The translations under genes and the position numbers were made by a program. The notes under the pieces are model-generated. The model had not been told where the DNA came from. It saw only the letters and a list, made by a program, of their open reading frames with translations, and did not search any database. Of a stretch of DNA of 64,000 nt, positions 6,279 through 54,544 are shown in pieces. The stretch spans positions 62,001 to 126,000 of IMG/VR virus record IMGVR_UViG_3300033182_000674; one strand, written 5' to 3'. Within the stretch, counting starts at the first letter, position 1. Each line of letters begins with the position of its first letter.

Positions 6279-6315
6279 TCACTTTTTTTAAAAAAATTGT
6301 AATATACATTAAGGA

Positions 6316-6660: not shown

Positions 6661-6690
6661 ATTAGTATTCCTTTTTAAAAATTAAAAATA

Positions 6691-8240: not shown

Positions 8241-8250
8241 TTTATATCCC

Positions 8251-8622: not shown

Positions 8623-8638
8623 AATATAGTTTTATTTT

Positions 8639-9547: not shown

Positions 9548-9595
9548 TATTATCTCCCGGTTTATAATTTGTGGCTTTTCATTAAAGCTTATCTA

Positions 9596-9603
9596 TATTT
9601 ATA
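9596..9603 (-). promoter_or_regulatory. gp55-dependent late promoter (TATAAATA); further copies at 2935, 16553, 20128, 24906, 33447, 55292, 55776
   Basis: Exact T4 late consensus on the minus strand, each copy ~30-80 nt upstream of a gene start; gp55 is encoded in the window. Confidence 0.8.
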
Positions 9604-9607
9604 TAAG

Positions 9608-37368: not shown

Positions 37369-38055
37369 CTATTCTGATATAAAATCATTTGCCATAGGGA
37401 ATACCTCAGCAATCACCTTGGCACATTCTCTTGCAAGTTCCATATGCTCTTTTTGAGTTCCATGACCAGATCGCAATTGGATATAATGTACCCAACTACG
37501 AAGAGTTCCATTGACATACAATCTAGACTTAGTTAAACCTTCTGGTAAAACAACTCTAGCTTGTTCTTTTGCAATACCATTATGGATTGCCCATTCATAT
37601 GCTTCTTTAGCAGCATCAATAACTCTTTTCTGATGTTGTTCAAAAAGATAAGCTAACTTTTGATCATCAGTTGGAATAGAGTTTTGACGATTATTATAAT
37701 CTTGTAGACGACATTCACGTGTTACAAATTGATCACCAAACTCTGCTGGATCTGCATAACGTTGTGAAAATTCTTGGAATGAAAAAGATCTATGACGGAG
37801 TAATTGACGAGCAATATCTCTAGTAGTATCTACTTCAATACAAGCGCTTACCATCTCTAATGGAGACCAATGAGCATGCTTAATAAGATAATTAATAAGC
37901 TTTTCTGAAGTTTCAATATTATATTGATTATTAGGATTAGATACTCTAGCTGCAAATGCAATCAACTCTTGAACATTATTCATTTGTTCAGATAGATTGT
38001 CATCAAATACATCTTTATGTAATTGTGAGTAACTTATAAGTTTTGCTTTCATCAT
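37369..38055 (-). CDS. thyX: FAD-dependent thymidylate synthase
   Basis: RHRSFSFQEFSQRY ThyX signature, H.SP.E, EQAR.VLP. Confidence 0.95.
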   Translation of the reverse strand: MMKAKLISYSQLHKDVFDDNLSEQMNNVQELIAFAARVSNPNNQYNIETSEKLINYLIKHAHWSPLEMVSACIEVDTTRDIARQLLRHRSFSFQEFSQRYADPAEFGDQFVTRECRLQDYNNRQNSIPTDDQKLAYLFEQHQKRVIDAAKEAYEWAIHNGIAKEQARVVLPEGLTKSRLYVNGTLRSWVHYIQLRSGHGTQKEHMELARECAKVIAEVFPMANDFISE

Positions 38056-39425
38056 AATTTAAAATCCGTAAATTTGCTATCATCTGGAGAAGGTTGCTTT
38101 TGATAAACTGGTGTATCATCAACTAATGTTTGTTCACCTTCATCAACATCATACAATCTCATTTTAGATCGGTCAACACCAATAACAAAACGTTTCTTGT
38201 ACGTTGGATCATTATATCTATTCTTCAATTGTTTTACTGCAATTTGACCCATATTCTCAAGTTCTTCAGTTGAAACAATCGCAAACATTAAATCGGCTGT
38301 AGCAGGTAGACCAAATGATTCTGAAGTATCTTCAAGACCAACATCAGTATTACCATAACCAGAACGAGTTGTTTGTGTGGCTGACATAATTGGTGCATCA
38401 AACTCTACAGCAAGACCACGTAGTTCTTCAGCGATTGCTTTGATATAACTATAAGAGTTAATAGAACCACCCATACCTTTCATACGAGATGAAGCACAGA
38501 TGTTTAAGTAATCAATAAAGATAATATCTGGTTTGAATGATTTCTTAAGTTGTAATTCATTCAATAAAGCTCTAAAGTGGCTAGCATGTGCTTGGCCAGT
38601 TGGATATTCTTTAATGATTAATTTACCATTAGTCTTATTAGAAATATCTCTTACTTTATCAGAGAACATATCTTTGGTCAAGTTTTCAAGTTGATCAATA
38701 GGTACATTTAGTAAGTTAGCATCGATACGTTCTGCGATACGTTCTTCTGCCATTTCCATAGTTATATATAAAACATTCTTGCTCTGAGACAAAACCGCGG
38801 CAGCATGATGACACATAAACAATGACTTACCCACACCAGTACCAGCAAGGATAATATTCAACGATTTCTTTGGCAAACCACCTTTTGTAATAAGATTGAA
38901 GTAATTCAAATCGAAAGGTAAACGTTCTTCATCACGATGATAGAATTCAAAACGTTCTTGATAATTTTCTAAGTAGTCGTGACCAACGTTATTATCAAAT
39001 GAAACCGCAAGAGCTTTTGTTAAAATGTCTGGTAATGAATTCTTAGTAAGAGTGTTGTGTTTACCATCAATAATCTGAATAGATTCCATAACCGCATTAT
39101 ACAATGCACGATCTTGACACCATTTTTCAGTCGTATCATATAACCATGTCTTATCAGTTTCTTCATGAGCAAAAAGATTAGGAAGTACTTCTACTGCATG
39201 GCTATATTGTTCTTCATTCAAATTTTCAAGATTATCAATTTCAATCTTAAACGCTTCAGCTGTTGGTAGTTTATTATACTTACCAACAAACTTACCAGCT
39301 TCTTTAAATAAAATTTTGTATACACCTTCAAAATAATCAGGTTTAATGAAAGGCAAAACCTTTCTCATATATTCTTCATTGGTAAGAATATTTTTTAATA
39401 CAACTTGTTCGATATTTGTGTTCAA
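38052..39425 (-). CDS. 41: Replicative DNA helicase gp41
   Basis: AGTGVGKS, EMAEERIAERIDAN, IDYLNIC, SESFGLPATAD. Confidence 0.96.
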   Translation of the reverse strand: MNTNIEQVVLKNILTNEEYMRKVLPFIKPDYFEGVYKILFKEAGKFVGKYNKLPTAEAFKIEIDNLENLNEEQYSHAVEVLPNLFAHEETDKTWLYDTTEKWCQDRALYNAVMESIQIIDGKHNTLTKNSLPDILTKALAVSFDNNVGHDYLENYQERFEFYHRDEERLPFDLNYFNLITKGGLPKKSLNIILAGTGVGKSLFMCHHAAAVLSQSKNVLYITMEMAEERIAERIDANLLNVPIDQLENLTKDMFSDKVRDISNKTNGKLIIKEYPTGQAHASHFRALLNELQLKKSFKPDIIFIDYLNICASSRMKGMGGSINSYSYIKAIAEELRGLAVEFDAPIMSATQTTRSGYGNTDVGLEDTSESFGLPATADLMFAIVSTEELENMGQIAVKQLKNRYNDPTYKKRFVIGVDRSKMRLYDVDEGEQTLVDDTPVYQKQPSPDDSKFTDFKL

Positions 39426-39766
39426 ATTACGTCCTTCATGGTAATGCCTTCATTATTTACAATAGCTGATTCAATAATAGCTAGTAAAGTATCTGCAGCT
39501 TGTTGTTGTAGCCCAACTGTATCTTCTGTTACAGTTTCATCTGGACTACTTATAAGACTAAAATCAAATGTCATGTAAGATTGTTGTTCATCTAACTCAC
39601 CATTTTCATCTTCACCTTTAATAGTAATCTTGCCATATTCAATTACAGTTTCAGGATAATCACCAGTTAGAAAACGAACACGCCAAAGATCACCGTCAGC
39701 TGGAACAAGTTGATAATCTTTATTCTCATAAAGACCAGTTTGCGGTTTATATTTTTCTTTACTCAT
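39422..39766 (-). CDS. Hypothetical protein at the gp40 position between uvsX and 41
   Basis: Synteny with T4 uvsX-40-41; start reassigned to 39766. Confidence 0.5.
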   Translation of the reverse strand: MSKEKYKPQTGLYENKDYQLVPADGDLWRVRFLTGDYPETVIEYGKITIKGEDENGELDEQQSYMTFDFSLISSPDETVTEDTVGLQQQAADTLLAIIESAIVNNEGITMKDVI

Positions 39767-40814
39767 CTGCATTCTCCGCAATCTCTTCCATATCAACTAA
39801 TGAATTGTAGCCAATAGAGTATTGCTTCTTAAGAAACTCTTTAAAGTCTGTACCTTCAAAGATTGGAGTCCAGAATTCTTCTTCTAACGTTTGGGCTTCT
39901 CGTACTTTAGGCTCCACAAGTTCACCAGTTTCTTTATCCACCCGACAATACCAACCATTGCTAGGCTTAACGACGTAACCACCAGCAAGGCCAGCATCGA
40001 GAAGACCACTATAACGCTGAACACCACCTTCCCAAGAAACAGTAATAGGAATTTTAGATTTTTCTTTAACATATCTTGACTTCTCTACATTAATTACAAA
40101 ATGATAACCTTGGATTTCTGTACCTTTCTTATCTTGTTGACGGCCAAGGATCCAGATGTTATCAGCTGAATAGTAGATACCAGTACCACCACCAACTACA
40201 TCTTTAGGGAACAAACCAATCTCTTTATAGGTGTGGTTAATAGCCAACAATGGAATATCTTTCATTGTTAGATAAGGTGTTGTCATACGGAACAAACCTT
40301 TAAGTGCTTTAGCGCGAGACATATCAGCAACTGATTTTTCATTCAATGCATCTTCCATTTCTTTCTTTGATGCAAGGTTACCAATAGAATCAATAACAAC
40401 AATTACTTTATCACCACGTTCGATTTGCTCAAGCTGGCCAATCATATCAAACTTAAGTTCTTCTACGTTAGTAATAGGAGTATGAAGAACACGTGAAGTG
40501 TCAATACCATATTGTTCAAAGTAAGATTGTGGTGAACCAAATTCTGAATCATAGAATAGCATAACAGCATCATCATATTTTTTCATATAAGCTGCAGCCA
40601 TCAACAAAGCAAAAGAAGTTTTAAAGTGTTTAGATGGACCAGCAAGAACTGTTAGTCCAGGAGTAACACCGCCATCAACAGAACCAGATAACGCAACGTT
40701 AATCATAGGAACGTTCGTTGGTACCATATCTTTTTCTTTAAAAAATTTAGATTCAGAAAGAACTTCAGTATGCTTAAGCTTAGAGTTCTTTTTAAGTTTG
40801 TCCATTATACTCAT
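39759..40814 (-). CDS. uvsX: RecA-like recombinase UvsX
   Basis: AGPSKHFKT, YDSEFG, DSIGNLASKKE, DMSRAK. Confidence 0.96.
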   Translation of the reverse strand: MSIMDKLKKNSKLKHTEVLSESKFFKEKDMVPTNVPMINVALSGSVDGGVTPGLTVLAGPSKHFKTSFALLMAAAYMKKYDDAVMLFYDSEFGSPQSYFEQYGIDTSRVLHTPITNVEELKFDMIGQLEQIERGDKVIVVIDSIGNLASKKEMEDALNEKSVADMSRAKALKGLFRMTTPYLTMKDIPLLAINHTYKEIGLFPKDVVGGGTGIYYSADNIWILGRQQDKKGTEIQGYHFVINVEKSRYVKEKSKIPITVSWEGGVQRYSGLLDAGLAGGYVVKPSNGWYCRVDKETGELVEPKVREAQTLEEEFWTPIFEGTDFKEFLKKQYSIGYNSLVDMEEIAENADE

Positions 40815-40817
40815 AAA

Positions 40818-41141
40818 TTAAACCTCGTCAAATTTGACTATCCACTCTTTTTTATGTTCCCAACCAATTTCACTAAAATATTCAGAAATTATACCTGGAA
40901 GAGTGTTTTCCAAGCGTTCACGTGGAACAAGCATTTTATACTCAAATAACTCTTTTGAAGAAATTGGAGTTGTATTTCTGAGTTTTACTTTTTCAAGTGT
41001 TTTACGATTTTCGAGAACAACATTTTTTGCATTAATAGCATATAAGCCTCTGTCAAGAGTTTTATACATTGCTTTGGCCATATAATCTGGCATATATGTA
41101 AAAGCAGAAGTGATGCTAGAAACTTCTAAAATTGTTTTCAT
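40818..41141 (-). CDS. Hypothetical protein
   Basis: GGAG RBS; promoter TGTACT-17-TATAAT at 41170-41198. Confidence 0.55.
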   Translation of the reverse strand: MKTILEVSSITSAFTYMPDYMAKAMYKTLDRGLYAINAKNVVLENRKTLEKVKLRNTTPISSKELFEYKMLVPRERLENTLPGIISEYFSEIGWEHKKEWIVKFDEV

Positions 41142-41206: not shown

Positions 41207-42400
41207 TTACATAAAACCGTCAAGAGTTGATGGCTCGTATTCAGACCAGAATGTCTGAGCTTTATTATCTTGAACAGCATATGGTGCTTCAATAGTATCA
41301 ATATTGCCACCTAAGAAGTTTTTAATATTAGTTGCCATATCCATTGCAGTACTTACTGGAACATTTTGTGCAATCATATTAAGATTTCTGCGTCCACCGT
41401 GCAAGATAAAATCTTTTGGCATCTTCATAATATCAAGAGCTTCTCTTGTATTGATATAACGATTTTCATCAGGGTGCGTAAGAGTAGTTACAAAATGACC
41501 AACAAAAGCACCAATATGTCCTTTACCAATCTCTGTCATCTTACGCATTAAGTTACCACCATTATCTAACTTATCTTGCATACGCTTACATTTTTGAGCA
41601 ATACTATCATGACCATTTGCTCTCATCCATTTAGCAACTTCAGTATATTTTATTTTATTTGCTTCAATATAAACCAATGGATTAGTCGACTTCTCAATCA
41701 TATTAAAGAAATCCATATGAGTAATTCCACCGTGCATTTCTTCTAAAATATATTGATAGTATGGATTATCAGTTGGCTTTTGTAAATTAGTTGGACTATT
41801 CCACATTAAGTCATTTACAATATCATCATGTTTAGATGATCTAATCTGTTCTTCAATACGAGTAAAAGGCCGTTTATAATATTCAAATACTGGAATCTTA
41901 TTACCTTTCCAAAAGAAGTAAAAGGTTCTATCACGTACTTGTGATAAGCCATGAAGAAGAGATTTAGTTTTGTATATACTAAGTGTATATCCATTTTCTC
42001 TTGCAAGCTTTCTCATTTGATGAACGATTGGTGCACCCATTTTACTTGCAAGACGTGGAGCATTTTCTCCCCAAAAAACAGCAGGTTTAATTTCTTCAAG
42101 AACATATTTAGCTGATGTAATCATCCAATCATTAGTTGTACTATCACTACGACTACTTGGGCTTAAAGAAGATAAACCTGCACAAGGACAAACTGCATTC
42201 ACTACGTCCACAGATTTATTTTGTAAATCACCTTGATCTAATAAATGATAAGGTACTTCATTATTATAATATTCTAAAAGTTGTTTATCATTATTTTCAA
42301 AAGGTGTATAAGAGAGAATATAATCAGGTTTATTACCAAATACATTCTGCATTGCAATCGTTTCACCACCAATAAGTGGTACTATACTAGCGTACTTCAT
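41207..42400 (-). CDS. DNA cytosine-C5 methyltransferase-like protein
   Basis: Motif IV CPCAGLS, VI ENA, VIII Q.R.R, IX/X R....RE....M..P.DF...QNVP; degenerate motif I (PLIGG). Confidence 0.75.
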   Translation of the reverse strand: MKYASIVPLIGGETIAMQNVFGNKPDYILSYTPFENNDKQLLEYYNNEVPYHLLDQGDLQNKSVDVVNAVCPCAGLSSLSPSSRSDSTTNDWMITSAKYVLEEIKPAVFWGENAPRLASKMGAPIVHQMRKLARENGYTLSIYKTKSLLHGLSQVRDRTFYFFWKGNKIPVFEYYKRPFTRIEEQIRSSKHDDIVNDLMWNSPTNLQKPTDNPYYQYILEEMHGGITHMDFFNMIEKSTNPLVYIEANKIKYTEVAKWMRANGHDSIAQKCKRMQDKLDNGGNLMRKMTEIGKGHIGAFVGHFVTTLTHPDENRYINTREALDIMKMPKDFILHGGRRNLNMIAQNVPVSTAMDMATNIKNFLGGNIDTIEAPYAVQDNKAQTFWSEYEPSTLDGFM

Positions 42401-43400
42401 TTAAAAATTTCCTCGCAGTTGCTAGTGCAGAATTAATTGCTTGGTGCATATCAACATAAACGTACATACCACAACGACCAATAAACTGCATCTTAGTTTC
42501 ATCTACCATATCTTTATACAGTTTATATATCTTTCTATTCTTGCCTTCTACATCTTTTACTGGATAATAACGCTCAAGATTATTATCACGATAGTCACAC
42601 GGTTCTTCATAAGTAAGAACAGTCATCTTATTATTATCGCCATGACCTGGAATATTTTTCCATTCGGTTACTCGAGTATATGGACCATCATGAGTAAAGT
42701 TAACAGTACCAGTTGGTAGCACTTTAGACATTGGTAATTCCACATTATGGAACTTAATAGAGCGATACGGTAATTCGCCATGACAAAAATGGAAGTAATC
42801 ATCAATTGGCATTGAATTAAAGATATAATCGTAATCATCTTCCATTTCATATGTAAATTCTGTATCTAAATTTACTGTAATGTTTTCATGTAAGAAAATA
42901 CTTTCAAAGACTTCAGTATAACCATTCTTTGGCATCATCTGATATTCATCATTAGGAAAATATAATTCGTTATCATCATCGCGAGTAGGAATACGATTAA
43001 TAATTGATGGATCTAGTTCATCAAGTGTTTTACCCCACATTTTTAGAGTATAAGGTCTAAAGAAAATATCTAAAACGTTTTCTTCACCAACAATCTCTTT
43101 AGTTTCTTTATTTACTGGAAGAGTTACATAACGGCCATCACTTAACTGTGCTTTTACTTTATGTTTATAATCAATCCATTCAGTAAACTTAGATAGCCAA
43201 TCAACAACATCTTTATTATTAGTATGAAACAAATGTGGACCATACTGGTGGATTCTGATGCCATTCGCATCAACATAATCATAGGCATTACCACCAATAT
43301 GGTCGCGTTTATCGATGACAGTTACTTCATGATCTGCTTCTGCTAATTCACGAGCAATAACTGCACCAGAAAATCCAGCACCAACTACTAAGACTTTCAT
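42387..43400 (-). CDS. glf: UDP-galactopyranose mutase
   Basis: VVGAGFSG, HIGGNAYD, H.YGPHLFHT, LPYRS, RYYP, GRCG.Y.Y.DMHQAI. Confidence 0.92.
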   Translation of the reverse strand: MKVLVVGAGFSGAVIARELAEADHEVTVIDKRDHIGGNAYDYVDANGIRIHQYGPHLFHTNNKDVVDWLSKFTEWIDYKHKVKAQLSDGRYVTLPVNKETKEIVGEENVLDIFFRPYTLKMWGKTLDELDPSIINRIPTRDDDNELYFPNDEYQMMPKNGYTEVFESIFLHENITVNLDTEFTYEMEDDYDYIFNSMPIDDYFHFCHGELPYRSIKFHNVELPMSKVLPTGTVNFTHDGPYTRVTEWKNIPGHGDNNKMTVLTYEEPCDYRDNNLERYYPVKDVEGKNRKIYKLYKDMVDETKMQFIGRCGMYVYVDMHQAINSALATARKFLNEVR

Positions 43401-44509
43401 AGAATAACTCCAAGTTCTTTTTGCTGTAGTTCTTTATCTAATGGATGATTCTTATATAGCATATGTTTTTGTGCTGCTGCTGTTTCCATCAATTCGTCAA
43501 GAGACATTTGCTCTACATCATGAGCAGTTAAGCTTGCAAGTTTTTCATCTCCATATAATAAAAACATTTCATCATATGCACCAATAAGAATAGAACCTGC
43601 GTCGGCAACTTGTAATGGACGAGCTCTCCACCAGCCTGATCCTGCATGATCATAACCTGGCATTAAACAACCCCATTGTTCTGCATAAACTTTACACATA
43701 TCACCTTCACCAAGCCGACGTTGTTTTTCTTTACGAGAACCAAAGAATTCAATCTCCCAATTAGTCACATTTTGTTTCTTTAACCACTTAGCAGTCTTAC
43801 CTTGTACTAATGAAGCAAAGTTAAAGATCTTAGCTTTATTAGAAGGAGATACAGTATCTTCAGCTTCAGTTAACGTCATTTGTTGTTCCATAAAATCCAT
43901 TTCATCTACAGGAATATCACCACGATCACCGGGTTTACGGTTACGATGATATGGATTAGGATTATAACCAACCAACAATTCTTTAGGATAGTCAATCAAC
44001 TTACTTAGATCACCACCCATAAAGACAGACATTAATACACGAGCTTTCTTTTCGCCAATATATTTTACTGCATCTAAAAGAATATCAGTATGTGGTTCCA
44101 ATACTTCACGTGAAAGAGTTGGATCACAACCTTGACTTTGTTGAATAGTAAACTCTTTTAATAGAGATTCTTTATCAGTGCATGATTGAATACCTTTAAA
44201 AATATCAGCTGTTTGCCAATCATCAAATGCTAGTACAAGATTTTCTTTTGGTGTAGCGTGAATAGCCCATAGACCATTATAAAAAGCAAGTTGTAATGCT
44301 TGACGTGGTGAAGCAAGAAAACAAATAACACGATGATATTCAGATAAATCTTCACCAATATTAACAAGACGTTGTTCTACTTCATAACCCATATCTTCTA
44401 AACAACGTATTAAAGAATAATGTGAAGGAACTACTTTCAATTGCTGGCGTAAATAAAAATCTTTTGTTGTTTGATTCTTATTCATACCAGTGATTAGAAT
44501 TTTTTTCAT
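43397..44509 (-). CDS. Putative GT-B DNA glycosyltransferase (T4 beta-glucosyltransferase-like)
   Basis: KVVPS...L..MGYEV...D...Y.R.I N-terminus and R..Q...AG.IL. C-terminal motif resemble T4 BGT as I recall it; start reassigned to 44509 (TAATG overlap). Confidence 0.6.
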   Translation of the reverse strand: MKKILITGMNKNQTTKDFYLRQQLKVVPSHYSLIRCLEDMGYEVEQRLVNIGEDLSEYHRVICFLASPRQALQLAFYNGLWAIHATPKENLVLAFDDWQTADIFKGIQSCTDKESLLKEFTIQQSQGCDPTLSREVLEPHTDILLDAVKYIGEKKARVLMSVFMGGDLSKLIDYPKELLVGYNPNPYHRNRKPGDRGDIPVDEMDFMEQQMTLTEAEDTVSPSNKAKIFNFASLVQGKTAKWLKKQNVTNWEIEFFGSRKEKQRRLGEGDMCKVYAEQWGCLMPGYDHAGSGWWRARPLQVADAGSILIGAYDEMFLLYGDEKLASLTAHDVEQMSLDELMETAAAQKHMLYKNHPLDKELQQKELGVIL

Positions 44510-45366
44510 TATTTTAACTCCATTTGATATGCTGATTCGCACATATCTTTTAGATCACGTTTAGTTTCCAAATACTTAGATTTGTTATCAACACACAACT
44601 CAGCTGGATCGCCTTCGCGGCGTGGTCCATATTCAATTTTAAAGTTGTTTGTACATTGTACCATTATATCACAAACCTCTGCATTTGTAAACCCTTTACC
44701 AGAACCAAGACATTCATAGTCTTTATTCTCAGGAGTATTTAGTGCAGCATTACAGATAGCATCTGCGAGATCTACCACATGAATATAATCACGAATACAT
44801 GTTCCATCACGCGTAGGATAATCATCTCCAAAGATAACCATCTTCTCTCTTTTACCAGCAGCAACCTCAGCTGCTACTCTAATAATATGAGTCGATTCAC
44901 CAATCTGTCTAAACTCACCACCAGATCCAGCAACATTAAAGAATCTAAAGATAGTATAATTCTTTGCCATCTGTTTAATAACATCTTCAGCCGCTACTTT
45001 AGATTTAGCATATGGAGAAATAGGATCAAATGCGCCAGCAGTAGAAGCAAAGATAAAGTGATCACAATCTACATTCTTTAAAACTTTCATTGTCTTATGA
45101 AGATTAGTATCATAATATTTTGCAGGATTAGTCATCGATTCTGCAACAGAAATATAACCTGCACAATGTACTACTACATCATATCGTCCAACCCACAAAG
45201 CAGCATCATGAATATCATAATGTGTTAGGTACTTTCTAACTGGTTTAGCATTAGGTGAATCTTCAATATCAACACCTGTTACTTTAAATCCAGCATCATA
45301 TAATGCTTTTGCGGTATGAGAACCAATATAACCATTTACACCTGTTACTAATGCAGTCTTACTCAT
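44509..45366 (-). CDS. galE: UDP-glucose 4-epimerase-like SDR
   Basis: TG..GYIGSH, ES...P.KYY..N, YAKSK, R.FNVAG, DGTCIRDYIHV.DLA, RREGDP. Confidence 0.88.
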   Translation of the reverse strand: MSKTALVTGVNGYIGSHTAKALYDAGFKVTGVDIEDSPNAKPVRKYLTHYDIHDAALWVGRYDVVVHCAGYISVAESMTNPAKYYDTNLHKTMKVLKNVDCDHFIFASTAGAFDPISPYAKSKVAAEDVIKQMAKNYTIFRFFNVAGSGGEFRQIGESTHIIRVAAEVAAGKREKMVIFGDDYPTRDGTCIRDYIHVVDLADAICNAALNTPENKDYECLGSGKGFTNAEVCDIMVQCTNNFKIEYGPRREGDPAELCVDNKSKYLETKRDLKDMCESAYQMELK

Positions 45367-45835
45367 TTTCTACTCCCAAGCGTTTAATATTAACTTTTGC
45401 TTCATTGCACATCGAAACAGTAGTATCATAAGACTCTTGCCAAATTGGTGGAATCTCTCCTTCCATATCCCAATAGATGTTTTTGACACCTACTTGGATA
45501 ACACCTTTGGCACATTCAGAGCACATAGGAAGCCCCCAGATGTAAAGATCTGATCCGTCTAAAGATACACCATTATACGTTGCATTATATATGCAGTTCA
45601 TTTCTGCGTGCACGACGTATTTATATTTAGTCTCGCGATCCTCATATCGGTTCTCGTCATCATTGATTCCTCGTGGGAAACCATTATAACCCTGTGCAAG
45701 TACTTGACCTTTTGAGCCGACTGCTACAGCACCGATCTTTTTAGATGGATCCTTAGACCAACCAGAAAATTCTTTCGCTAAATTCATATAGCGGTTTTGC
45801 CATGATTTATTAACAGGCCACATAATTAATCCCAC
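45359..45835 (-). CDS. cd: dCMP deaminase
   Basis: SKDPS, GYNGFPRG, HAE.N, P.C.EC. Confidence 0.92.
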   Translation of the reverse strand: MGLIMWPVNKSWQNRYMNLAKEFSGWSKDPSKKIGAVAVGSKGQVLAQGYNGFPRGINDDENRYEDRETKYKYVVHAEMNCIYNATYNGVSLDGSDLYIWGLPMCSECAKGVIQVGVKNIYWDMEGEIPPIWQESYDTTVSMCNEAKVNIKRLGVENE

Positions 45836-46371
45836 AAACTTCTAAAATATTTTCCAAATAAACGAAATCCATTGTCCATACGTTTAGAATATTCATCATA
45901 CTTTTCTTTATCAAACTTTCCTTTTAAAGAACTTGTATCCATTTCATACCACTCATATTCTTCATTTTCACCCTCATCATTAGGAAATAAAAGTAATTGA
46001 GCTGGTCCAACACCAGTACTCTCCATTTCAAATAAACTTACTGAATCGCTATCATAGTTAAAGAACTGGTCTTCCCATTCGTTATTAAGACTAGCAAAAG
46101 CAAAAATCATTTCATCAATTACATAATCCCAAGCTTTAAAATGATATGGATCTGTTTCACCTACTTCAATAGGCAAATCACAGCGTAAGCGTTCTGGACG
46201 ATCTTCCATATCAACAAATGGCGCACCATGTTTTTCCTTTTTTAATTGTCTCAACATTGGTTCAACTAACAATGCTAGTGTATGATCCATTGACCAAGTA
46301 TCGTAATCATCTATATGAATAGAGACATCACGATAACCTTCTTCTACATATGGTCCAATTTGTACATTCAT
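45826..46371 (-). CDS. Conserved phage hypothetical protein
   Basis: DTWSMD.TLA, W....DEMIFAF, GF.LFGKY...LWD; start reassigned to 46371 (ATGA overlap). Confidence 0.65.
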   Translation of the reverse strand: MNVQIGPYVEEGYRDVSIHIDDYDTWSMDHTLALLVEPMLRQLKKEKHGAPFVDMEDRPERLRCDLPIEVGETDPYHFKAWDYVIDEMIFAFASLNNEWEDQFFNYDSDSVSLFEMESTGVGPAQLLLFPNDEGENEEYEWYEMDTSSLKGKFDKEKYDEYSKRMDNGFRLFGKYFRSLWD

Positions 46372-46823
46372 TTCATTAAATCTCCAAAGAAAGAGAAAGC
46401 AACATCTTTTGCAACTTGATCTGTTACTTCCCACATCGGTATCATAAGATTAATTTCCTCTGATGTTGGTGGTACAAACATTTTATTTGTATCATCAAAC
46501 CGACCTTCATTAATAGTATTCATCCAAATTACATAATCAGGTTTAAGCAACTTACGCGTTTCAGGTGTAGGAGAAATCATATCAACAATAGAATAAGGAT
46601 ATACAGAATTATCTACAAGTTTACGCATACGAGTTGCAGCTCGAATACGACCTTCTTCTGAAAAATCCCAATCTTGATATGCTTCACGAATTTTATCTGC
46701 ATTAAACCAATTAGGAATTACGCCATGATTTTCAAATTCAGTTTTTAGTTTTTCAGCAAATGTAGTCTTACCTGAACCAGGTAGACCCATCACTAATATC
46801 ATTTTATTCGACATCCCAATCAT
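46368..46823 (-). CDS. Adenylylsulfate-kinase-like P-loop kinase
   Basis: GLPGSGKTT, NAD.IR, DFS.EGR.R. Confidence 0.75.
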   Translation of the reverse strand: MIGMSNKMILVMGLPGSGKTTFAEKLKTEFENHGVIPNWFNADKIREAYQDWDFSEEGRIRAATRMRKLVDNSVYPYSIVDMISPTPETRKLLKPDYVIWMNTINEGRFDDTNKMFVPPTSEEINLMIPMWEVTDQVAKDVAFSFFGDLMK

Positions 46824-47511
46824 TCCTAATTAAATCAAAATGGCGTTCATATACATGTAAATTTTGAACTTGCCAGTAAATTGTACTTGGTGTAATAACA
46901 TCATCAATAGTTTCTGTTTGACGATTAATGTCATCACATAGTTTACGAAGAACATATTTTTGCCAAGCAAAATCATTCTTATATCCAAAGACGACATCAT
47001 TTGATCGCATTTGAACTACTGCATACATTTTTTTATTACGAATATAATAAGTTACACCATTAGTACAAATAAAATCAGACTTACCATCTTCATTAAATTC
47101 TGTCCAGATAGTTGGACGTTGATAAACCATTTCAGCACGACGGCCGTCTGGATTATTGAGTAACTCATTTAATACTTTCTCGTATTGATTACCATATTGT
47201 TCAGAGAAAATTAGTAATCCATAATTTGAATTAATAAGGCCGTCGCTGTTAGCAGCATACTTCCAAGCAGCAGGAGGATCGCGATCTTCGCCGAAAATGT
47301 CATTGATATTGTTCGATTGTTTTTCATACCATTCAATCTCCTTCATGATATATTCATTATTAGGTTTACCAAAGATTGCTGGTTCATCAGCAATAAAAGA
47401 AGCGCCAATCCATTCAATAGTCTTAGCACCAGTTTTATCTGTGGTAAAGTTCTTTGCTCTTAGTTCGCCTTCAAAGAAAGCACGGACATTTTTAACTGTT
47501 GGGATATTCAT
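46804..47511 (-). CDS. 42: dCMP hydroxymethylase (T4 gp42 homolog)
   Basis: DKTG.KTIE.IGASF.ADEP.IFG, INSNYG, SDF.CTN, MRSNDVVFG..ND.AWQKYVL, LHVY.RHF, all closely matching T4 gp42; Asp retained at the cytosine-specificity position. Confidence 0.92.
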   Translation of the reverse strand: MNIPTVKNVRAFFEGELRAKNFTTDKTGAKTIEWIGASFIADEPAIFGKPNNEYIMKEIEWYEKQSNNINDIFGEDRDPPAAWKYAANSDGLINSNYGLLIFSEQYGNQYEKVLNELLNNPDGRRAEMVYQRPTIWTEFNEDGKSDFICTNGVTYYIRNKKMYAVVQMRSNDVVFGYKNDFAWQKYVLRKLCDDINRQTETIDDVITPSTIYWQVQNLHVYERHFDLIRNDWDVE

Positions 47512-47930
47512 TATTTAGCCTTTTCAATATTATAAACTGATTTACGTAAACCACTACTTGAGAATCTATGATCTCGTTTATTAAAGTAAAGTTCAATATC
47601 ACGTCGACGACATTCATCTTTACCAGTAAAGTCTTTATCACGATACTCATCACCGAGAATACGAATATTAATCGGATACATGTTTATTATATCAAGTAAA
47701 TCGGCTTCTGTACAATACGGAATGATTTCATCTACATATTTTACTGCAGCCAATTGTGTATGTCTTTCTACAATGGTTTGTACCGGTGAATTCTTTTCAG
47801 GACGATCAACTGATGGATCTACTTGTAATCCACAAATTAAATAATCACATCGTGCTTTTGCATCACGCAACATTGTGATATGACCAGCATGTAATAAATC
47901 AAATGTACTACAAGTAAATCCTACAATCAT
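47511..47930 (-). CDS. TagD/RfaE-like cytidylyltransferase
   Basis: FDLLHAGH, ER...L....YVDE, R.H..SSS. Confidence 0.85.
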   Translation of the reverse strand: MIVGFTCSTFDLLHAGHITMLRDAKARCDYLICGLQVDPSVDRPEKNSPVQTIVERHTQLAAVKYVDEIIPYCTEADLLDIINMYPINIRILGDEYRDKDFTGKDECRRRDIELYFNKRDHRFSSSGLRKSVYNIEKAK

Positions 47931-48040
47931 TGCTTCTTTTCCTTCGCTTTGTTATTCATCAATTTACAAGATCCCCATTTACATGATGGGTTTATTTTCT
48001 TTTTACATACTACACAAGTATCAGTCTGAGATGAATTCAT
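47927..48040 (-). CDS. Small Cys/Lys-rich peptide (37 aa), not in the ORF track
   Basis: MNSSQTDTCVVCKKKINPSCKWGSCKLMNNKAKEKKQ; stop overlaps the next ATG (ATGA). Confidence 0.4.
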   Translation of the reverse strand: MNSSQTDTCVVCKKKINPSCKWGSCKLMNNKAKEKKQ

Positions 48041-48377
48041 TGTATTCTTCTTCTGTCATAAATGATTCAATTAAACTAGTATCTTCAACTTCTAATTTAA
48101 ACATCCATACAGATGCATCATCATTTAAAGTTTCTGGTGTATCTAGAATATCTTCATTAACTTCGACTACTGTTCCAGCCATTGGACAATAAACATCTGA
48201 TGCTGCTTTTACAGATTCAACTACTGCACAATCTTCATCTGCTTCATAGTACTTACCAACTTCTGGTAACTCAATGAAAACTAAATCACCAAGTAATTCT
48301 GCAGCATGCGCAGTAATACCAACAAAGACGTAATCTCCGTCTTGTTCTACCCATTCGTGTTCTTTTGTATAACGCAT
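48021..48377 (-). CDS. gcvH: Glycine cleavage system H protein
   Basis: YT.EHEWV, VGIT..A...LGD.VF.ELP, lipoyl-Lys motif VESVKAASD. Confidence 0.93.
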   Translation of the reverse strand: MRYTKEHEWVEQDGDYVFVGITAHAAELLGDLVFIELPEVGKYYEADEDCAVVESVKAASDVYCPMAGTVVEVNEDILDTPETLNDDASVWMFKLEVEDTSLIESFMTEEEYNEFISD

Positions 48378-48721
48378 TATTCTTTTCTTCCTCCGTCAAA
48401 GACGCAAACAAAGTATAAGCCATTCTCATTAGCATATACTCTATGAAAAGCACCATCTGGTATTTGAATAATATCACCTGCTCTTACATTGAACACTTCA
48501 TCATCAATTTCCATTTCACCATCGCCATACATGAAAAAATAAACTTCTTCTTGTCCTTCATGGCTATGACCATTGGTTGCTTTATTTGGTTGTAATCTTG
48601 TTGAACTAAGTACTAGGTTATTTAGTAATGTATTATCAGTGACCACATAACGATCATCTGATTTTACTACATTACCATTTACTACCCACCCAGCATGAAC
48701 ATAATCTTCAATATCAATCAT
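48377..48721 (-). CDS. Cupin-domain protein
   Basis: GHSH..QEEVY.F..G.G and GD...IP.G.FHRV. Confidence 0.85.
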   Translation of the reverse strand: MIDIEDYVHAGWVVNGNVVKSDDRYVVTDNTLLNNLVLSSTRLQPNKATNGHSHEGQEEVYFFMYGDGEMEIDDEVFNVRAGDIIQIPDGAFHRVYANENGLYFVCVFDGGRKE

Positions 48722-49481
48722 TATTAAAACCTAACAATTTATTGTTATATTCCAATAGAGATTTAGTAGCAGTTGGATCAATGCCTACACTTTCAGCCCA
48801 AGCACACCAACCATAGATATCTTTTGGAATACATTTACTATTAGCTCCACGATTATCAGGGAAGACAAAAGTCCACCATAGATTTTGTCGTGGGTCATCA
48901 CCATAAACAGCTTCTCGAATAGTATAATAATCTACTCCAGCTGCTTCACATGCATCATATAATTCTTGGCATTGCATTACCTTATAGAAAATTGCACGAT
49001 TTTCAGAGAATTTAATAATCTCTGCTTCATATGCAGATACTTGACGAATATTAACATTAGCATTATAAGCTTGTTGATAACATTCAATAACTTTACGAGT
49101 ATCTTCTTTAGTACCACCAAGAATCATAAACTGACGAGAATCCATTTGTAAGAATGGATGATTAGGTGTTTCACCAAGATATTCTGGTTGAACTACAATG
49201 CGTTTATTATATTTCTTAGCCATCTCATCAGCAAATCCTGGTTGAGTAGCAGAACGAATAACAATGAAATCACATCCGCATTCTTTAATAGCATCTTCTA
49301 CAGCAGAACAATCTAATCCATCGCCTTGATTCCACGGAGTAGGTACGGCAAGAAAAGCAATATCACAATTTTCTAAAGGCTTTGTAAATCCTTCGATATA
49401 TTTATCGTAAACTTGTGCATCAGGAAAAAGTTTTTGTGTTGCTTTGCCAATCCAACCGTATCCAATGATTCCTACTTTCAT
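48714..49481 (-). CDS. UDP-glucose/GDP-mannose dehydrogenase-like protein (lacks C-terminal domain)
   Basis: GIIGYG.IG, AVPTP, IRS, PEYL, AE..K..EN, CIPKD. Confidence 0.8.
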   Translation of the reverse strand: MKVGIIGYGWIGKATQKLFPDAQVYDKYIEGFTKPLENCDIAFLAVPTPWNQGDGLDCSAVEDAIKECGCDFIVIRSATQPGFADEMAKKYNKRIVVQPEYLGETPNHPFLQMDSRQFMILGGTKEDTRKVIECYQQAYNANVNIRQVSAYEAEIIKFSENRAIFYKVMQCQELYDACEAAGVDYYTIREAVYGDDPRQNLWWTFVFPDNRGANSKCIPKDIYGWCAWAESVGIDPTATKSLLEYNNKLLGFNND

Positions 49482-50607: not shown

Positions 50608-51543
50608 TCAAACCATCTTATATGCGTACTCAATAGCACGATCTGCTTCCACATTTAGTGGTCTATTTTCATACAAATTTGATGTATCTCTATCAAGTTC
50701 ACGTATAAGCATTTCAATTTCTGTTGCAGAGATAGGATATTCTTTCTTAAGAGCATTAATTGCAATAGAACTCATAATACGATATATCATAGCATAACGA
50801 CCAGTATTATCAATATGAGCAATGTCTTTATATTCTTTTACTAGCTTCTTATTTACAAATGGACAATCAGTATAACCTGACCAAGATATAGTAGTATTTT
50901 GAAGTTTAGATTTTTTGTATTCGATAACTTTCTTTTGTAAATCATCAGGCAGACGATCCATAAAAGTTCTGCCTTCTTTTATTGGAGCTGGATGTTTTTC
51001 TATAAGTGCATAAGGATCAACGTAATCACCAATATTAGTGAAAATAAAGTTATCAGCAGAATCGTAAGCTGCAGGGATGTAATACATTCTAGATAAGTCT
51101 TTAGTTTGTCTATCTCCCACTGAACCAACTTCTGTGTTGAGAGCGTACCAGAATTTTTTGATTGCATCTGCTCCAACTGTTGTTTTAAGTGGGAAAACAA
51201 GTCTGAACTTTGGTTTAGCAATGGTATTACTAGCAGTACTATAACAAACATAGTAATACCTGCCGAAACGAGAATGAAGTTCATTTTTTAGATCGCCTTT
51301 GAATTCGTGATCGTCTACATCGATCGCTGCCCAACCAGCCCAAGCAATAACGTTTTTATTCGCTCGAGTAGTACCATTAGTATATATGGCTGGAGACATC
51401 AATTGTGCGTCTTTTTTTCCTTTACGTCGTATTTTTGACAGATCGTATAAAAACTTCTCAAACTTATTCCAGTCTGAGAAGTTCATATTTTTGTCAGTCT
51501 TATTATCGTAAATAGACTTAAAAAATGTCGCTGAGATTTCCAT
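50608..51543 (-). CDS. Archaeo-eukaryotic primase (prim-pol)-like protein
   Basis: SPA.Y....R...NV, AIDVDD, YSTAS....PKFRLVFPL, D....D.SR.YY.P and a helical C-terminal domain. Confidence 0.7.
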   Translation of the reverse strand: MEISATFFKSIYDNKTDKNMNFSDWNKFEKFLYDLSKIRRKGKKDAQLMSPAIYTNGTTRANKNVIAWAGWAAIDVDDHEFKGDLKNELHSRFGRYYYVCYSTASNTIAKPKFRLVFPLKTTVGADAIKKFWYALNTEVGSVGDRQTKDLSRMYYIPAAYDSADNFIFTNIGDYVDPYALIEKHPAPIKEGRTFMDRLPDDLQKKVIEYKKSKLQNTTISWSGYTDCPFVNKKLVKEYKDIAHIDNTGRYAMIYRIMSSIAINALKKEYPISATEIEMLIRELDRDTSNLYENRPLNVEADRAIEYAYKMV

Positions 51544-51937
51544 GATTATCTTTATGGCTTGGTGCAGTCCAACCTTCTGGTTTCATTAGATCTGGTAATC
51601 CAAGTGGATTAGGACGCTCTGGTTTAATACCAGGTTCTTTTGACATATTAGCTGCATGTACACGATCCCATGCTTCATGTGCGTTAACACCAAATGCATC
51701 AAGTGTTCCAATTGCAACTACACATAAATCAATTAAGCCATCAACAACTTCTTCTGCATCTTTATTCATAAGAGCTGAACGTGTTTCATTATACTCTTCA
51801 CCAATAAAATCTAAGCGAAATTGTAGAAACTTTTGAAGTGTTTCATAATCTTTTTCAAATAATTTTTTAAGTGCCCACTCATGCACACCAAACTTTTGAT
51901 GCATATCGTGAATATCTTTTACCCAATCTTTAGACAT
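51518..51937 (-). CDS. MazG-like/PRA-PH NTP pyrophosphohydrolase (candidate dCTPase/dUTPase)
   Basis: EE..E, E.VD.L.D, V..ANMSK, KPEGW..P; promoter at 51963-51991. Confidence 0.8.
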   Translation of the reverse strand: MSKDWVKDIHDMHQKFGVHEWALKKLFEKDYETLQKFLQFRLDFIGEEYNETRSALMNKDAEEVVDGLIDLCVVAIGTLDAFGVNAHEAWDRVHAANMSKEPGIKPERPNPLGLPDLMKPEGWTAPSHKDNHGNLSDIF

Positions 51938-51994: not shown

Positions 51995-54544
51995 TTACGA
52001 GAAGAAATCTTCAAGAGTATTTCTTTCGTCAACAGACCAACCAACAGCTTCAAGGATAGGACTTAGAGGTTCAATGAAAGTCTTTTCAAACTGCATATCA
52101 TAGTCAATATACTTATTTAGATTCAATGGCTCTGGAAGGTAATCAGGGAACGAGATAACGTTTTCCTTGATAGGATTAGGTAACTTCATATATGAGAATT
52201 TAACCTTATCACCAGGTTGAATCATTGAATATTTGTTTTCAAGAGATAACTCTTTGATATAGTGATTATATAGCAAAGCACCGCGAACATGAATCGGCGT
52301 GCCTTTACCATAAATTGTAGTGCGGTTTTTCCACTTGTCAATTTCATTTACACCACGAGGGAATGATACATCTTCAGGTGGTAGTTGTTTAAATTCTTGT
52401 TTGAAGTCATTGATAAACTTACGTGTCTTTTCTTCAGAACCAGAGATAATAATCTTAAATGATTCCTTAAACTTATTACGAACAACTTCTGGTGTAGATG
52501 ATTTAATAGCTTCGATACCCATGATCTTGAGTTTAGGTTCAGCATATTGTACACCTTCATTGTTATGTACATTAAGGATATAACGTTTCTTTGCAGTCCA
52601 AATACCACGATCAGCAATAACTTCACGACCCATTTCCATTCGAGCACGGTAACCATTCATTACATCGAATAGTTTAGCATAAGCATCAGCAATAACTTTT
52701 TCAAAATGTTCTTGGCAGATTTTATCAAGTGCAGCAACTGGATCTTTAGGCTGTAACTTTTCTACAAATGGACCGAAGTTAATATAAACAGAATCAGTAT
52801 CAATCGCAATAACATAATCAACGTTATCAGTCTTAAGAATCTTATTCATCTCGATGTTGATAGCTTTTTCAGCCCACTTAATCGATAATTGGCCTGTAAG
52901 AGTTACACTTTCAGCCAAAGCATTGTCGAAGTACTTAAAGTATTTGTTAGCTAATGCACCATAAAGAGAGTTAAGAAGAATCTTAATCGCCATCTGGTTA
53001 TTTTCAAGTTGGTTAATTTCAGATTCTATTTCATGAGATTTTTCTTGTTCATAACGCTGTTTAGCTTCAAGCATTTTCTTCTTGACTACTTTACGTTCTG
53101 AATACAATTCAACGATAAGTTCCGGAATAATACCTTGACGATCTTTATGAAAACCAACACCACTTGCTGTTGCAGCTATATCACCAGTAGTAACTGGTTC
53201 AGACATATTTAAATATTTTTCTGGGCCAACTGGGAAACGTTTATCGATATCACGTACAATAGTTTCGGGTGAGATATTATATTGTACAATAATATTAGGA
53301 TACAGTGAGTTTAAGTCAAATGATACCACCCAATTATGTAGACCAACTTGTGGATCTTTTACATAACCACCAGCAATACTTTTATTTTCACCGCTAGAGC
53401 CTTCAGCACCAACAACTGCGTATGGAATCTTAGGAATCTGACCAATTGGAGATATAATACGTTTCTTCATCAAACGACGATAGATAATTGATTCCCATAT
53501 AGAAGTAGTACCAAAAGTATCATTAATGTTAACGCCACCTTTAAATGCAATCGTAAGAGCTAGGTTAATAAGACCCATCTTATCGTCCATACGTTTAACA
53601 AGCAAAGTATCTTTAATATTATAGTCAATAAACTTTTGGTGATTATGTTTATATAGAGTATGAAGACTACCATACTCAGAATATGATAATTTACTTTCGC
53701 CAAGTACCACGTGAGCAATATGATCTAACTTGTAAGATTCTTGAGCACCATAAGAGTAACCAAACTTCTTAAACAATTCAAGATAGTCTGCTTGTTGAAT
53801 GCCAGTTAGTTCATAACCATATTGAGTTCGTCCACCAATAACAGTATTACGTTCGTTAATAAGTTTCCAAGGAGACAAATGTTTAACTGCTTCTTCACCG
53901 CCAATTGCACGTATACGATTTACAAGATAAGGTACGTCAAAGAAACGAATATTCCAACCTGTTATAACATCAGGTGTATTTGCAATCCAATATTGTAAGA
54001 AAGAAGATAAAAGTTTTGCTTCGTTTTCACAACGATGATAAGCAATACCAACACCATGAGTATCAATCTCTGTTGCTTCAGGATTATATTCGTCCAATCC
54101 CCATACTTGATAGTAATCAGACTTACTAGATTTTAATGCAATAGAGATGACGGGATATGCTGCTTCCTCAGGCTTGGGGAAACCTTCATCGGAAGCAACC
54201 TCGATATCGAAAGTTACAACATTAACGTCATCCATGTTGAACTTGATGTCATTAGGGAATCTTTCAGTAATATACTGATGGATATAGTTGGTCGTACCAT
54301 AGATTTTGAAGTTGTCCATATCACCATACGATGTCATAAACTCTTTAGCTTCTTTCATCGTATCAAAATGAATTGAATCAACTGGAACGCCATCGAATGA
54401 TGTCCATTTAGTCTGACCTTTTGCTGGTACAAAAAAGGTAGGTGAGAATTTTTCTTTCTTTTCGACTTTTATGCCGTTTTCGTCATAGCCGCGATAAAGA
54501 ATGCTATTGCCATAACGATTAACTGATGTGTAAAAACCTGACAC
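51995..54544 (-). CDS. 43: Family B DNA polymerase gp43
   Basis: ExoI FDIEV, DLNSLYP, KILLNSLYGA, DTDS, KKRY; GTG start; promoter TTTACT-17-TATAAT at 54576-54604. Confidence 0.97.
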   Translation of the reverse strand: MSGFYTSVNRYGNSILYRGYDENGIKVEKKEKFSPTFFVPAKGQTKWTSFDGVPVDSIHFDTMKEAKEFMTSYGDMDNFKIYGTTNYIHQYITERFPNDIKFNMDDVNVVTFDIEVASDEGFPKPEEAAYPVISIALKSSKSDYYQVWGLDEYNPEATEIDTHGVGIAYHRCENEAKLLSSFLQYWIANTPDVITGWNIRFFDVPYLVNRIRAIGGEEAVKHLSPWKLINERNTVIGGRTQYGYELTGIQQADYLELFKKFGYSYGAQESYKLDHIAHVVLGESKLSYSEYGSLHTLYKHNHQKFIDYNIKDTLLVKRMDDKMGLINLALTIAFKGGVNINDTFGTTSIWESIIYRRLMKKRIISPIGQIPKIPYAVVGAEGSSGENKSIAGGYVKDPQVGLHNWVVSFDLNSLYPNIIVQYNISPETIVRDIDKRFPVGPEKYLNMSEPVTTGDIAATASGVGFHKDRQGIIPELIVELYSERKVVKKKMLEAKQRYEQEKSHEIESEINQLENNQMAIKILLNSLYGALANKYFKYFDNALAESVTLTGQLSIKWAEKAINIEMNKILKTDNVDYVIAIDTDSVYINFGPFVEKLQPKDPVAALDKICQEHFEKVIADAYAKLFDVMNGYRARMEMGREVIADRGIWTAKKRYILNVHNNEGVQYAEPKLKIMGIEAIKSSTPEVVRNKFKESFKIIISGSEEKTRKFINDFKQEFKQLPPEDVSFPRGVNEIDKWKNRTTIYGKGTPIHVRGALLYNHYIKELSLENKYSMIQPGDKVKFSYMKLPNPIKENVISFPDYLPEPLNLNKYIDYDMQFEKTFIEPLSPILEAVGWSVDERNTLEDFFS

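Follow-up and report, generated by a model that had tools for sequence, protein, structure and literature searches.

The locus examined here raises the question of what kind of glycosyltransferase a T4-like phage would encode between two enzymes of galactose metabolism in the middle of its replication genes. We analysed a window of 64,000 nucleotides from a marine T4-like phage (IMG/VR record IMGVR_UViG_3300033182_000674, positions 62,001 to 126,000 of that record), in which a preliminary description had noted an unannotated open reading frame resembling a divergent T4 beta-glucosyltransferase (BGT), lying between the two enzymes that would make its donor, and had suggested that it may be a DNA furanosyltransferase. 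Each part of this proposal that could be examined computationally held up, although the step to a DNA furanosyltransferase remains an inference.

A conserved gene coupled to GalE-like and Glf genes

The open reading frame is real. It runs on the minus strand from an ATG at 44509 to 43397 and encodes 370 amino acids, and its translation contains the segments KKILITGM, KVVPSH..L..MGYEV, DLSEYHRVI and GSGWWRARPLQVADAGSILI. A longer reading from a GTG at 44542 was rejected because that codon lies inside the upstream GalE-like gene and because homologs begin at MK(I/K)L. The gene is translationally coupled on both sides: its ATG shares its A with the TAA stop of the GalE-like gene (44509..45366, minus strand, 285 amino acids), while its TGA stop overlaps the ATG of the Glf gene (42387..43400, minus strand, 337 amino acids) as ATGA. 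The upstream neighbour matches PF01370 and solved UDP-glucose 4-epimerases (E 7.9e-43) and is predicted to make UDP-galactopyranose from UDP-glucose. The downstream neighbour matches PF03275 (E 8e-51) and solved UDP-galactopyranose mutases (E 8.7e-77) and is the predicted maker of UDP-galactofuranose. However, both score under the NCBIfam equivalog cut-offs (TIGR01179, 201 bits against 262; TIGR00031, 278.7 bits against 303.75), and bacterial Glf homologs may act on other nucleotide sugars such as UDP-GalNAc and dTDP-fucose; the substrates of both enzymes are inferred.

The conservation of the protein is far more than would be expected by chance. A search of clusters at 90% identity found 688 homologs, and 597 representatives at 50% identity match the family profile. 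Among 24 sequences of 52-81% identity there are 64 invariant columns, including DDW (96-98) and SGWWRAR (291-297), and the family-invariant residues include D97, W98, G257, E268, W293, R295, R297, E314, A344 and Q347. Homologs in isolate phages are annotated 'hypothetical protein' or 'putative phage protein' in all but one case. A megablast search of the region against isolate phages, from which near records may have been missing, found nothing. Public sequencing runs matched the region only through two 151-base contigs from one metatranscriptome, at 44306-44456 and 44621-44767, which is too little to claim transcription.

A distant relationship to T4 beta-glucosyltransferase

Interestingly, conventional sequence searches give no functional name to this protein. 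Neither Pfam (at E 0.01) nor NCBIfam gave a hit, and the PHROGs match, phrog_14998, is of unknown function. Searches of PDB sequences with the single protein and with the family profile found no glycosyltransferase and no significant match, the single-sequence search giving only a chance-level hit to an unrelated designed protein. None of the 24 family members matches the curated BGT model PF09198 even at E 10, an HMM of 24 BGT relatives finds nothing in the phage genome at E 1, and BLASTP against T4 BGT recovered only the EFFG..EKQ segment (E 0.014). No match to the group 1 glycosyltransferase models PF00534 and PF13524 was obtained for the protein, although one of the 24 relatives hits PF13524 at E 0.0042.

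In contrast, comparison of family profiles with hhalign aligned the protein family full length with the BGT family, over about 300 columns, in two runs (E 2.1e-7, probability 93.6%, and E 4.8e-9, probability 95.5%), whereas the controls T4 AGT, a GT1 enzyme and the RL38J1 transferase gp215 gave E 0.11, 0.049 and 0.3, respectively. The aligned segments are those that had first suggested the relationship, namely the N-terminal strand-loop-helix, the DLSEYHRVI strand, and the R..Q...AG.ILI segment, which matches R269..E272...SDAVMLI of BGT. A language-model search likewise placed PF09198 clusters among the nearest named families. The predicted structure (pLDDT 88, pTM 0.87, although under 50 at residues 290-292 of the SGWWR loop) has a GT-B fold with BGT as the top solved structure, and its nearest structures include both T4 DNA glucosyltransferases, but the Z score for BGT is only about 2 above generic GT-B enzymes. 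At the residue level, BGT R269, G214, Q220 and G257 align with R297, G257, Q263 and G285, whereas R191 and E272, which are likely UDP ligands in BGT, are replaced by Q236 and Q300. The two hhalign runs disagree on the residue equivalent to the catalytic Asp100, pairing it with the invariant D97 in the local alignment and with the non-conserved D112 in the global one.

Gene order provides further support. The family B DNA polymerase (51995..54544, minus strand; PF00136 and PF03104) lies at the position of T4 gp43, upstream of a T4 gp42-type dCMP hydroxymethylase (46804..47511, minus strand), and the candidate transferase is followed by UvsX (39759..40814, minus strand; 79% identity by tblastn to Phage C48C1) and by a replicative helicase at the position of T4 gene 41 (38052..39425, minus strand), the latter assigned from DnaB-type P-loop motifs in its translation and from position rather than from a family search. 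This arrangement, 43 ... 42 ... candidate transferase ... uvsX-40-41, mirrors the T4 order 43-imm-42-b-gt-segA-uvsX-40-41.

Genomic context points to hydroxymethylcytosine in DNA as acceptor

The gp42-type enzyme matches T4 deoxycytidylate hydroxymethylase 1B49 at E 8.7e-71. The equivalents of Cys148 and Asp179 are kept, and its motif is RSND rather than the RSQN of 5-hydroxycytosine synthases (PMC13326640). A gp42-type gene lies upstream in 50 of 56 loci, and all 10 thymidylate-synthase (TS) homologs checked next to family members keep the dCMP-specific Asp, including those of Aeromonas phage 25, FBB1, DSL-LC01, GMA2 and four of the contigs that carry fused or tandem relatives. Phage C48C1 instead has a TET/JBP dioxygenase, followed by the homolog and then Glf. 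A small P-loop kinase next to the hydroxymethylase (46368..46823, minus strand; APS-kinase-like and P-loop Pfam hits, phrog_10255 'kinase') is a candidate nucleotide kinase for the modified dNMP, a role that is inferred, and analogous kinases sit beside the TS homologs of RB69, DLP3 and RL38J1 (PMC13326640). A dCMP deaminase (45359..45835, minus strand; PF00383, phrog_174) lies between gp42 and the transferase in most related loci and recurs in the contigs that carry fused relatives. A MazG/PRA-PH-type nucleotide pyrophosphohydrolase (51518..51937, minus strand; PF01503, E 7.7e-11), of a family also found next to the fused relatives, is a candidate dCTPase that would keep plain dCTP out of phage DNA, which is again inferred.

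Remarkably, nine of ten long relatives fuse this domain to a C5-cytosine DNA methylase (PF00145), and three of these also carry a UDG-superfamily domain. The fusions are found in phage contigs with MazG, a TS homolog and dCMP deaminase, and a tenth relative has two tandem transferase domains behind a separate methylase gene. In the window itself a C5-cytosine DNA methylase-like gene (41207..42400, minus strand; PF00145, E 4.7e-20) overlaps the end of the Glf gene by 14 nt and is conserved downstream of Glf in the closest loci, although its role in a phage that makes hmC is unexplained.

Linkage to Glf suggests UDP-galactofuranose as donor

Glf lies on the same strand directly downstream of the homolog in 70 of 76 related viral loci, and it is adjacent to the homolog in Aeromonas phage 25, Erwinia FBB1 and actinophage DSL-LC01, as well as in C48C1. 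Indeed, all the isolate groups that carry a full-length homolog also appear among the Glf holders or have Glf annotated next to it. A GalE-like homolog of at least 39% identity lies immediately upstream of the transferase in 21 of 80 loci. The 219.7-kb phage genome has no match to the BGT-family profile and no PF00534 or PF00535 glycosyltransferase that could otherwise use the Glf product. Nevertheless, one clade of six loci and all the methylase fusions lack a nearby Glf, so the family as a whole is not tied to furanose. The GSGWWR motif, which the preliminary description had singled out as distinctive, is not specific to the Glf-linked members; it is kept in relatives that have no Glf nearby, and more likely serves the shared nucleotide or DNA chemistry than furanose recognition.

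A proposed pathway and its alternatives

The best reading of these data, which we consider more likely than not, is that the gene encodes a DNA 5-hmC glycosyltransferase of the GT-B fold that descends from the same lineage as BGT and most likely transfers galactofuranose. The DNA acceptor is well supported, whereas the identity of the sugar, in the absence of any measured activity, is inferred from gene linkage alone. In this pathway the gp42-type enzyme would make 5-hydroxymethyl-dCMP, and, by analogy with T4, the adjacent kinase and cellular kinases would raise it to the triphosphate while the MazG-type enzyme and the dCMP deaminase drain plain dC nucleotides, and the phage polymerase would build hmC into the DNA. 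The GalE-like enzyme and Glf would then supply UDP-galactofuranose, and the transferase would flip out hmC in duplex DNA and move the sugar onto the 5-CH2OH group, with an acidic residue of the invariant D96-D97-W98 turn acting as the base and R297 holding the diphosphate, as inferred from alignment with BGT. If the chemistry is inverting as in BGT, the product is 5-(beta-D-galactofuranosyl-oxymethyl)cytosine, whose likely use is protection of phage DNA from host nucleases.

The principal alternative, which we regard as possible but unlikely, is that the enzyme glycosylates hmC from a pyranose donor, either UDP-glucose, as BGT does, or UDP-galactose from the GalE-like enzyme, with Glf serving another step such as a second sugar added by an unrecognised enzyme or a different target. 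In its favour, relatives without any Glf nearby keep the same core motifs, and GalE alone is paired with DNA glycosyltransferases in TET-linked clusters (10.1101/2023.12.21.572611). Against it stand the translational coupling of Glf to the transferase gene, the adjacency of Glf in most loci and in four unrelated isolate lineages, and the absence of any other recognisable glycosyltransferase in the genome by the profile searches above. Moreover, residues P28-S29-H30, Q46 and S161 are conserved in Glf-linked members and changed in both Glf-less groups, which would fit a donor switch.

It seems improbable that the acceptor is a host envelope glycan or a virion protein. Galactofuranose is best known from cell-envelope glycans, and Glf genes in Streptococcus and Lactobacillus phage records and in Atu_ph04 have been read that way (PMC6630229), but the present gene sits inside the replication and nucleotide-metabolism block, belongs to a family that accompanies a dCMP-type TS homolog or a TET/JBP enzyme and is fused to DNA-base enzymes, and resembles both T4 DNA glucosyltransferases in predicted structure. 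Similarly doubtful is a base other than 5-hmC, such as 5-hydroxycytosine or 5-hydroxymethyluracil: Glf and galactose-bearing 5-hydroxycytosine do occur together in Rhizobium phage RL38J1 (PMC13326640), and one fusion contig carries an HMUDK helical-domain protein (PF18723), yet the TS homolog of the window shares the active-site motifs of T4 gp42 and lacks the Asp-to-Asn signature of 5-hydroxycytosine synthases. Least likely is a catalytically dead protein kept for a binding or structural role, for although some likely BGT ligand residues are replaced, conservation is very strong in the expected active-site elements (DDW, FFGS, SGWWRAR and E314), the gene persists across 597 clusters, and it is coupled to donor-making genes.

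It is about as likely as not that the family makes 5-(galactofuranosyl-oxymethyl)cytosine, a furanose-bearing form of hmC that we found described nowhere in the literature searched, which did not extend to the Iyer et al. 2013 survey of DNA-modification systems. The base would then be common in marine and estuarine T4-like phages and present in cultured Aeromonas and Erwinia phages, the enzyme would be, to our knowledge, the first GT-B galactofuranosyltransferase, and its relatives fused to C5-cytosine methylase domains would form a wider, undescribed class of single-polypeptide cytosine hypermodification enzymes. If the prediction holds, it would add a sugar in an unusual five-membered ring form to the natural DNA base modifications, explain Glf genes in T4-like phages that have been annotated as host cell-wall genes, and link the T4 beta-gt gene to a much larger and older family. 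In practice, an hmC-specific transferase with a donor orthogonal to UDP-glucose could complement T4 BGT in hmC labelling, and because furanosides are acid-labile the label could be removable. Such DNA would probably also behave differently toward glucosyl-hmC-specific restriction systems, which is relevant to phage-host studies.

Comparison with known DNA glycosylation systems

Known galactofuranosyltransferases of the GlfT1/GlfT2 type, which appear to have a GT-A fold, share the genetic linkage to Glf, but the protein studied here is predicted to be GT-B and no PF00535 match was found in the genome. There is no detectable sequence relation to T4 alpha-glucosyltransferase, and the RB69 and DLP3 arabinosyltransferases act on 5-hydroxycytosine. 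In the Rhizobium phage RL38J1 pathway (PMC13326640), a phage-encoded Glf (gp84) is likewise proposed to supply UDP-galactofuranose for a DNA base sugar, and a TS homolog and a kinase lie next to the first transferase; however, 'galactosyltransferase 1' (gp215) is unrelated in sequence to the present protein, the base is 5-hydroxycytosine, and Glf lies about 60 kb from the transferase, whereas here the two genes overlap. The TET/5mYOX-associated phage DNA glycosyltransferases (Burke 2021, PMC8256090; Pyle 2023, 10.1101/2023.12.21.572611) perform post-replicative glycosylation of 5-hmC, and some are GT-B enzymes that resemble BGT, some depend on an adjacent sugar epimerase, and C5-methylase genes lie in the cluster. 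Neither paper mentions a mutase or a furanose, and the present phage, in which a search of the genome found no TET/JBP gene, makes hmC at the nucleotide level.

The closest known system is T4 BGT itself (gene b-gt; PF09198), an inverting enzyme with which the protein shares a predicted two-domain GT-B fold, full-length profile homology, a gene position between gene 42 and uvsX, and a phage that makes hmC with a gp42-type enzyme. Identity is nevertheless only about 16-17% in the structural alignment, and the protein has an extra helical insert and a variable acidic loop at about residues 100-225 together with the DDW and SGWWRAR signatures. It is coupled to GalE-like and Glf genes, which T4 lacks, so the donor is probably UDP-galactofuranose rather than UDP-glucose.

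A conserved gene coupled to sugar-nucleotide enzymes

The window is part of a 219,676-bp virus record that CheckV rates complete, with a GC content of about 34%, and near-identical sequence occurs in marine, estuary and aquaculture metagenomes. On its minus strand, from 44509 to 43397, lies an ORF of 370 aa, the ATG of which shares a base with the TAA stop of the upstream gene and the TGA stop of which overlaps the ATG of the downstream gene; the three genes are therefore translationally coupled. All of the sequence motifs cited in the preliminary description, which had proposed that this ORF resembles a divergent T4 beta-glucosyltransferase (BGT), are present in the translation. The protein has no Pfam or NCBIfam match and falls in PHROG 14998, function unknown. 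Nevertheless, it is clearly a real, conserved gene. A search of 90%-identity clusters found 688 relatives, 597 representatives at 50% identity match the family profile, and there are 64 invariant columns among 24 sequences of 52-81% identity. When remote isolate-phage homologs were added, ten positions stayed invariant: D97, W98, G257, E268, W293, R295, R297, E314, A344 and Q347. Two 151-base contigs from one estuary metatranscriptome run, at 44306-44456 and 44621-44767, lie on the transferase and the GalE-like genes at low depth, although this is only a weak hint of transcription and DNA carry-over is not excluded.

The neighboring genes are all on the minus strand. Immediately upstream (44509-45366) is a short UDP-glucose 4-epimerase homolog, which matches solved GalE at E 7.9e-43 and for which the best NCBIfam model is galE, albeit under its cut-off. 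Immediately downstream (42387-43400) is a UDP-galactopyranose mutase (Glf) homolog (E 8.7e-77). The phage Glf is about 40 residues shorter than bacterial enzymes, lacking residues that correspond to D. radiodurans UGM 130-169, and it scores just under the NCBIfam equivalog cut-off; its substrate range may differ from that of bacterial UGMs. Farther upstream lie a dCMP deaminase (45359-45835), a conserved unknown (45826-46434), a small kinase (46368-46823) and a close homolog of the T4 gp42 dCMP hydroxymethylase (46804-47511; E 8.7e-71 to 1B49), followed by a MazG-type pyrophosphohydrolase (51518-51937) and a family B DNA polymerase (51995-54544). The gp42 homolog keeps the catalytic Cys and the cytosine-specifying Asp179, and has the RSND motif rather than the Asp-to-Asn change that marks 5-hydroxycytosine synthases (PMC13326640). 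Upstream of gp42, at 47511-49481, there is a run of an RfaE-II/TagD-like nucleotidyltransferase, a glycine-cleavage H protein, a cupin and a truncated NDP-sugar dehydrogenase (255 aa). The nucleotidyltransferase recurs near gp42 in many related loci, and this run may be a second sugar-nucleotide pathway with no identified user. In addition, a dATP/dGTP diphosphohydrolase N-terminal domain protein (PF18909; 49720-50031) and an ORF that, judged from its translation only, reads as a flavin-dependent thymidylate synthase (ThyX; 37369-38055) coexist with the gp42 homolog and dCMP deaminase, and the purine pyrophosphohydrolase hints at further nucleotide-pool editing.

Downstream of Glf is a C5-cytosine DNA methylase-like gene (41207-42400), in the translation of which the motifs PCAG, GENA, QVRDR and QNVP can be read. 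It sits in the same operon as a gp42-type hydroxymethylase, although hmC cannot be C5-methylated, and its role is unexplained; it could act on residual C or host DNA, in targeting, or in other chemistry. Beyond it come a small unassigned ORF (40818-41141), uvsX, a small ORF in the position of T4 gene 40 and a helicase ORF in the position of gene 41. The T4 order is 43-imm-42-b-gt-segA-uvsX-40-41, and the ORF therefore lies in the same stretch, between gene 42 and uvsX, that holds T4 beta-gt.

Predicted fold and relationship to T4 beta-glucosyltransferase

To investigate the relationship with BGT further, we built an AlphaFold2 model on 24 homologs. The model has a mean pLDDT of 88 and a pTM of 0.87, and its strand-helix pattern is that of two Rossmann-like domains. 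Foldseek against the PDB placed T4 BGT first (1qkj, E 2.9e-6), followed by many GT-B enzymes, and a scan of 48,161 representative chains that does not depend on Foldseek again ranked BGT first. BFVD showed uncharacterized phage proteins as the close structural relatives. A cluster hit in the AlphaFold DB, A0A139IK08, is a 944-aa cellular-database protein named 'NEDD8-activating enzyme E1 catalytic subunit', the C-terminal 390 residues of which (547-936) match the model at 36% identity (E 8e-31, TM 0.83); it may be another fusion or a mis-named entry.

The sequence profiles added specificity. The family alignment aligned with an alignment of 24 PF09198 proteins over about 300 columns at E 2.1e-7, and at E 4.8e-9 in global mode. 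In contrast, the same family profile gave E 0.11 against T4 alpha-glucosyltransferase, 0.049 against a GT1 enzyme and 0.3 against gp215 of Rhizobium phage RL38J1, although all of these E-values are for single comparisons. A protein-language-model search also listed PF09198 clusters among the nearest named families. In the alignments, BGT R269, G214, Q220 and G257 pair with R297, G257, Q263 and G285, while E272 pairs with Q300 and R191 with Q236. The catalytic Asp100 pairs with the invariant D97 in one run and with the non-conserved D112 in the other; we tentatively favor D96/D97, because they are invariant and follow a strand, as Asp100 does.

Evidence for DNA cytosine as the acceptor

Beyond synteny and the gp42 homolog, three independent lines of evidence point to DNA. 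In every isolate phage with a homolog there is either a second, gp42-like TS homolog with the dCMP signature, as in Aeromonas phage 25, Erwinia FBB1, actinophage DSL-LC01 and Gordonia GMA2, or a TET/JBP dioxygenase and no TS homolog. In Phage C48C1 (OQ984149.1; positions 6580-10027 of the locus, L001) the TET/JBP gene lies immediately upstream of the homolog, which is followed by Glf, and the same transferase-Glf pair is thus attached to the post-replicative route to hmC. Furthermore, nine of ten long relatives found by an exhaustive profile search carry an N-terminal C5-cytosine DNA methylase domain fused to the transferase domain. These are single polypeptides of 750-1400 aa, three of which have a UDG-superfamily domain in between and two of which (proteins P0222 and P0237) carry an intein with a LAGLIDADG endonuclease inside the methylase part. 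Finally, the genes for these long relatives lie in phage contigs next to MazG, a dCMP-type TS homolog and dCMP deaminase, which is the same module as in the window; no Glf was found in the flanking sequence examined around the fusions (up to 8 kb a side, with two of the contigs being short). The tenth long relative, in the same module, is an 867-aa tandem double transferase (6001-8604 of locus L100 and 1243-3846 of locus L101) directly behind a separate C5-methylase gene, an arrangement that would suit stepwise addition of two sugars.

Evidence for the donor

Among 80 related IMG/VR loci, Glf lies on the same strand directly downstream of the homolog in 70 of the 76 that extend far enough, and a gp42-like gene lies upstream in 50 of 56. 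Glf is also adjacent in Aeromonas phage 25, Erwinia FBB1, DSL-LC01 and C48C1. Indeed, all the isolate groups that carry a full-length homolog also appear among the Glf holders, or have Glf annotated next to it. A tree of the transferase shows two Glf-less groups: the methylase-fusion clade, and one tight clade of six marine loci (L067, L068, L072, L078, L082 and L086) nested among Glf-linked ones, in which the transferase gene is followed directly by uvsX and which could be a natural comparison set for donor specificity. The linkage is therefore old and was lost rarely. The phage genome holds no match to the BGT-family profile and no PF00534 or PF00535 glycosyltransferase, and the product of Glf thus has no other obvious user. 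A few positions (P28-S29-H30, Q46, S161 and others) are conserved in Glf-linked members and changed in both Glf-less groups, which is a lead for donor specificity, albeit one based on only two contrasts. The SGWWRAR motif, however, is kept in all groups, and so is not a furanose signature.

Proposed pathway and comparison with known systems

We propose that hmC enters the DNA through the gp42 route, that GalE-like and Glf convert UDP-glucose to UDP-galactofuranose, and that the transferase then glycosylates the hydroxymethyl group on DNA; if the chemistry is inverting as in BGT, the linkage is beta. The substrates, the catalytic residues, the stereochemistry and a biological role in nuclease evasion are inferences. 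The interpretation in the preliminary description, of a BGT-like and possibly furanose-transferring DNA glycosyltransferase, is supported as far as computation can go. Assignment as a DNA hmC glycosyltransferase is likely, whereas the full statement, including galactofuranose as the sugar, is held with less assurance and is only somewhat more probable than not.

We found no description of galactofuranosyl-hmC or of this family in the literature searched, which was incomplete, and a survey of Tevenvirinae does not list a glycosyltransferase for the Aeromonas phage 25 group. Work on TET-associated transferases mentions no mutase or furanose, but it does describe GT-B enzymes that resemble BGT, as well as epimerase-dependent transferases (PMC8256090; 10.1101/2023.12.21.572611). 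It is worth noting that a 2026 paper proposes UDP-galactofuranose made by a phage Glf for the galactose on 5-hydroxycytosine in Rhizobium phage RL38J1 (PMC13326640). There, however, the base differs, the transferase is unrelated, and Glf lies about 60 kb from the transferase.
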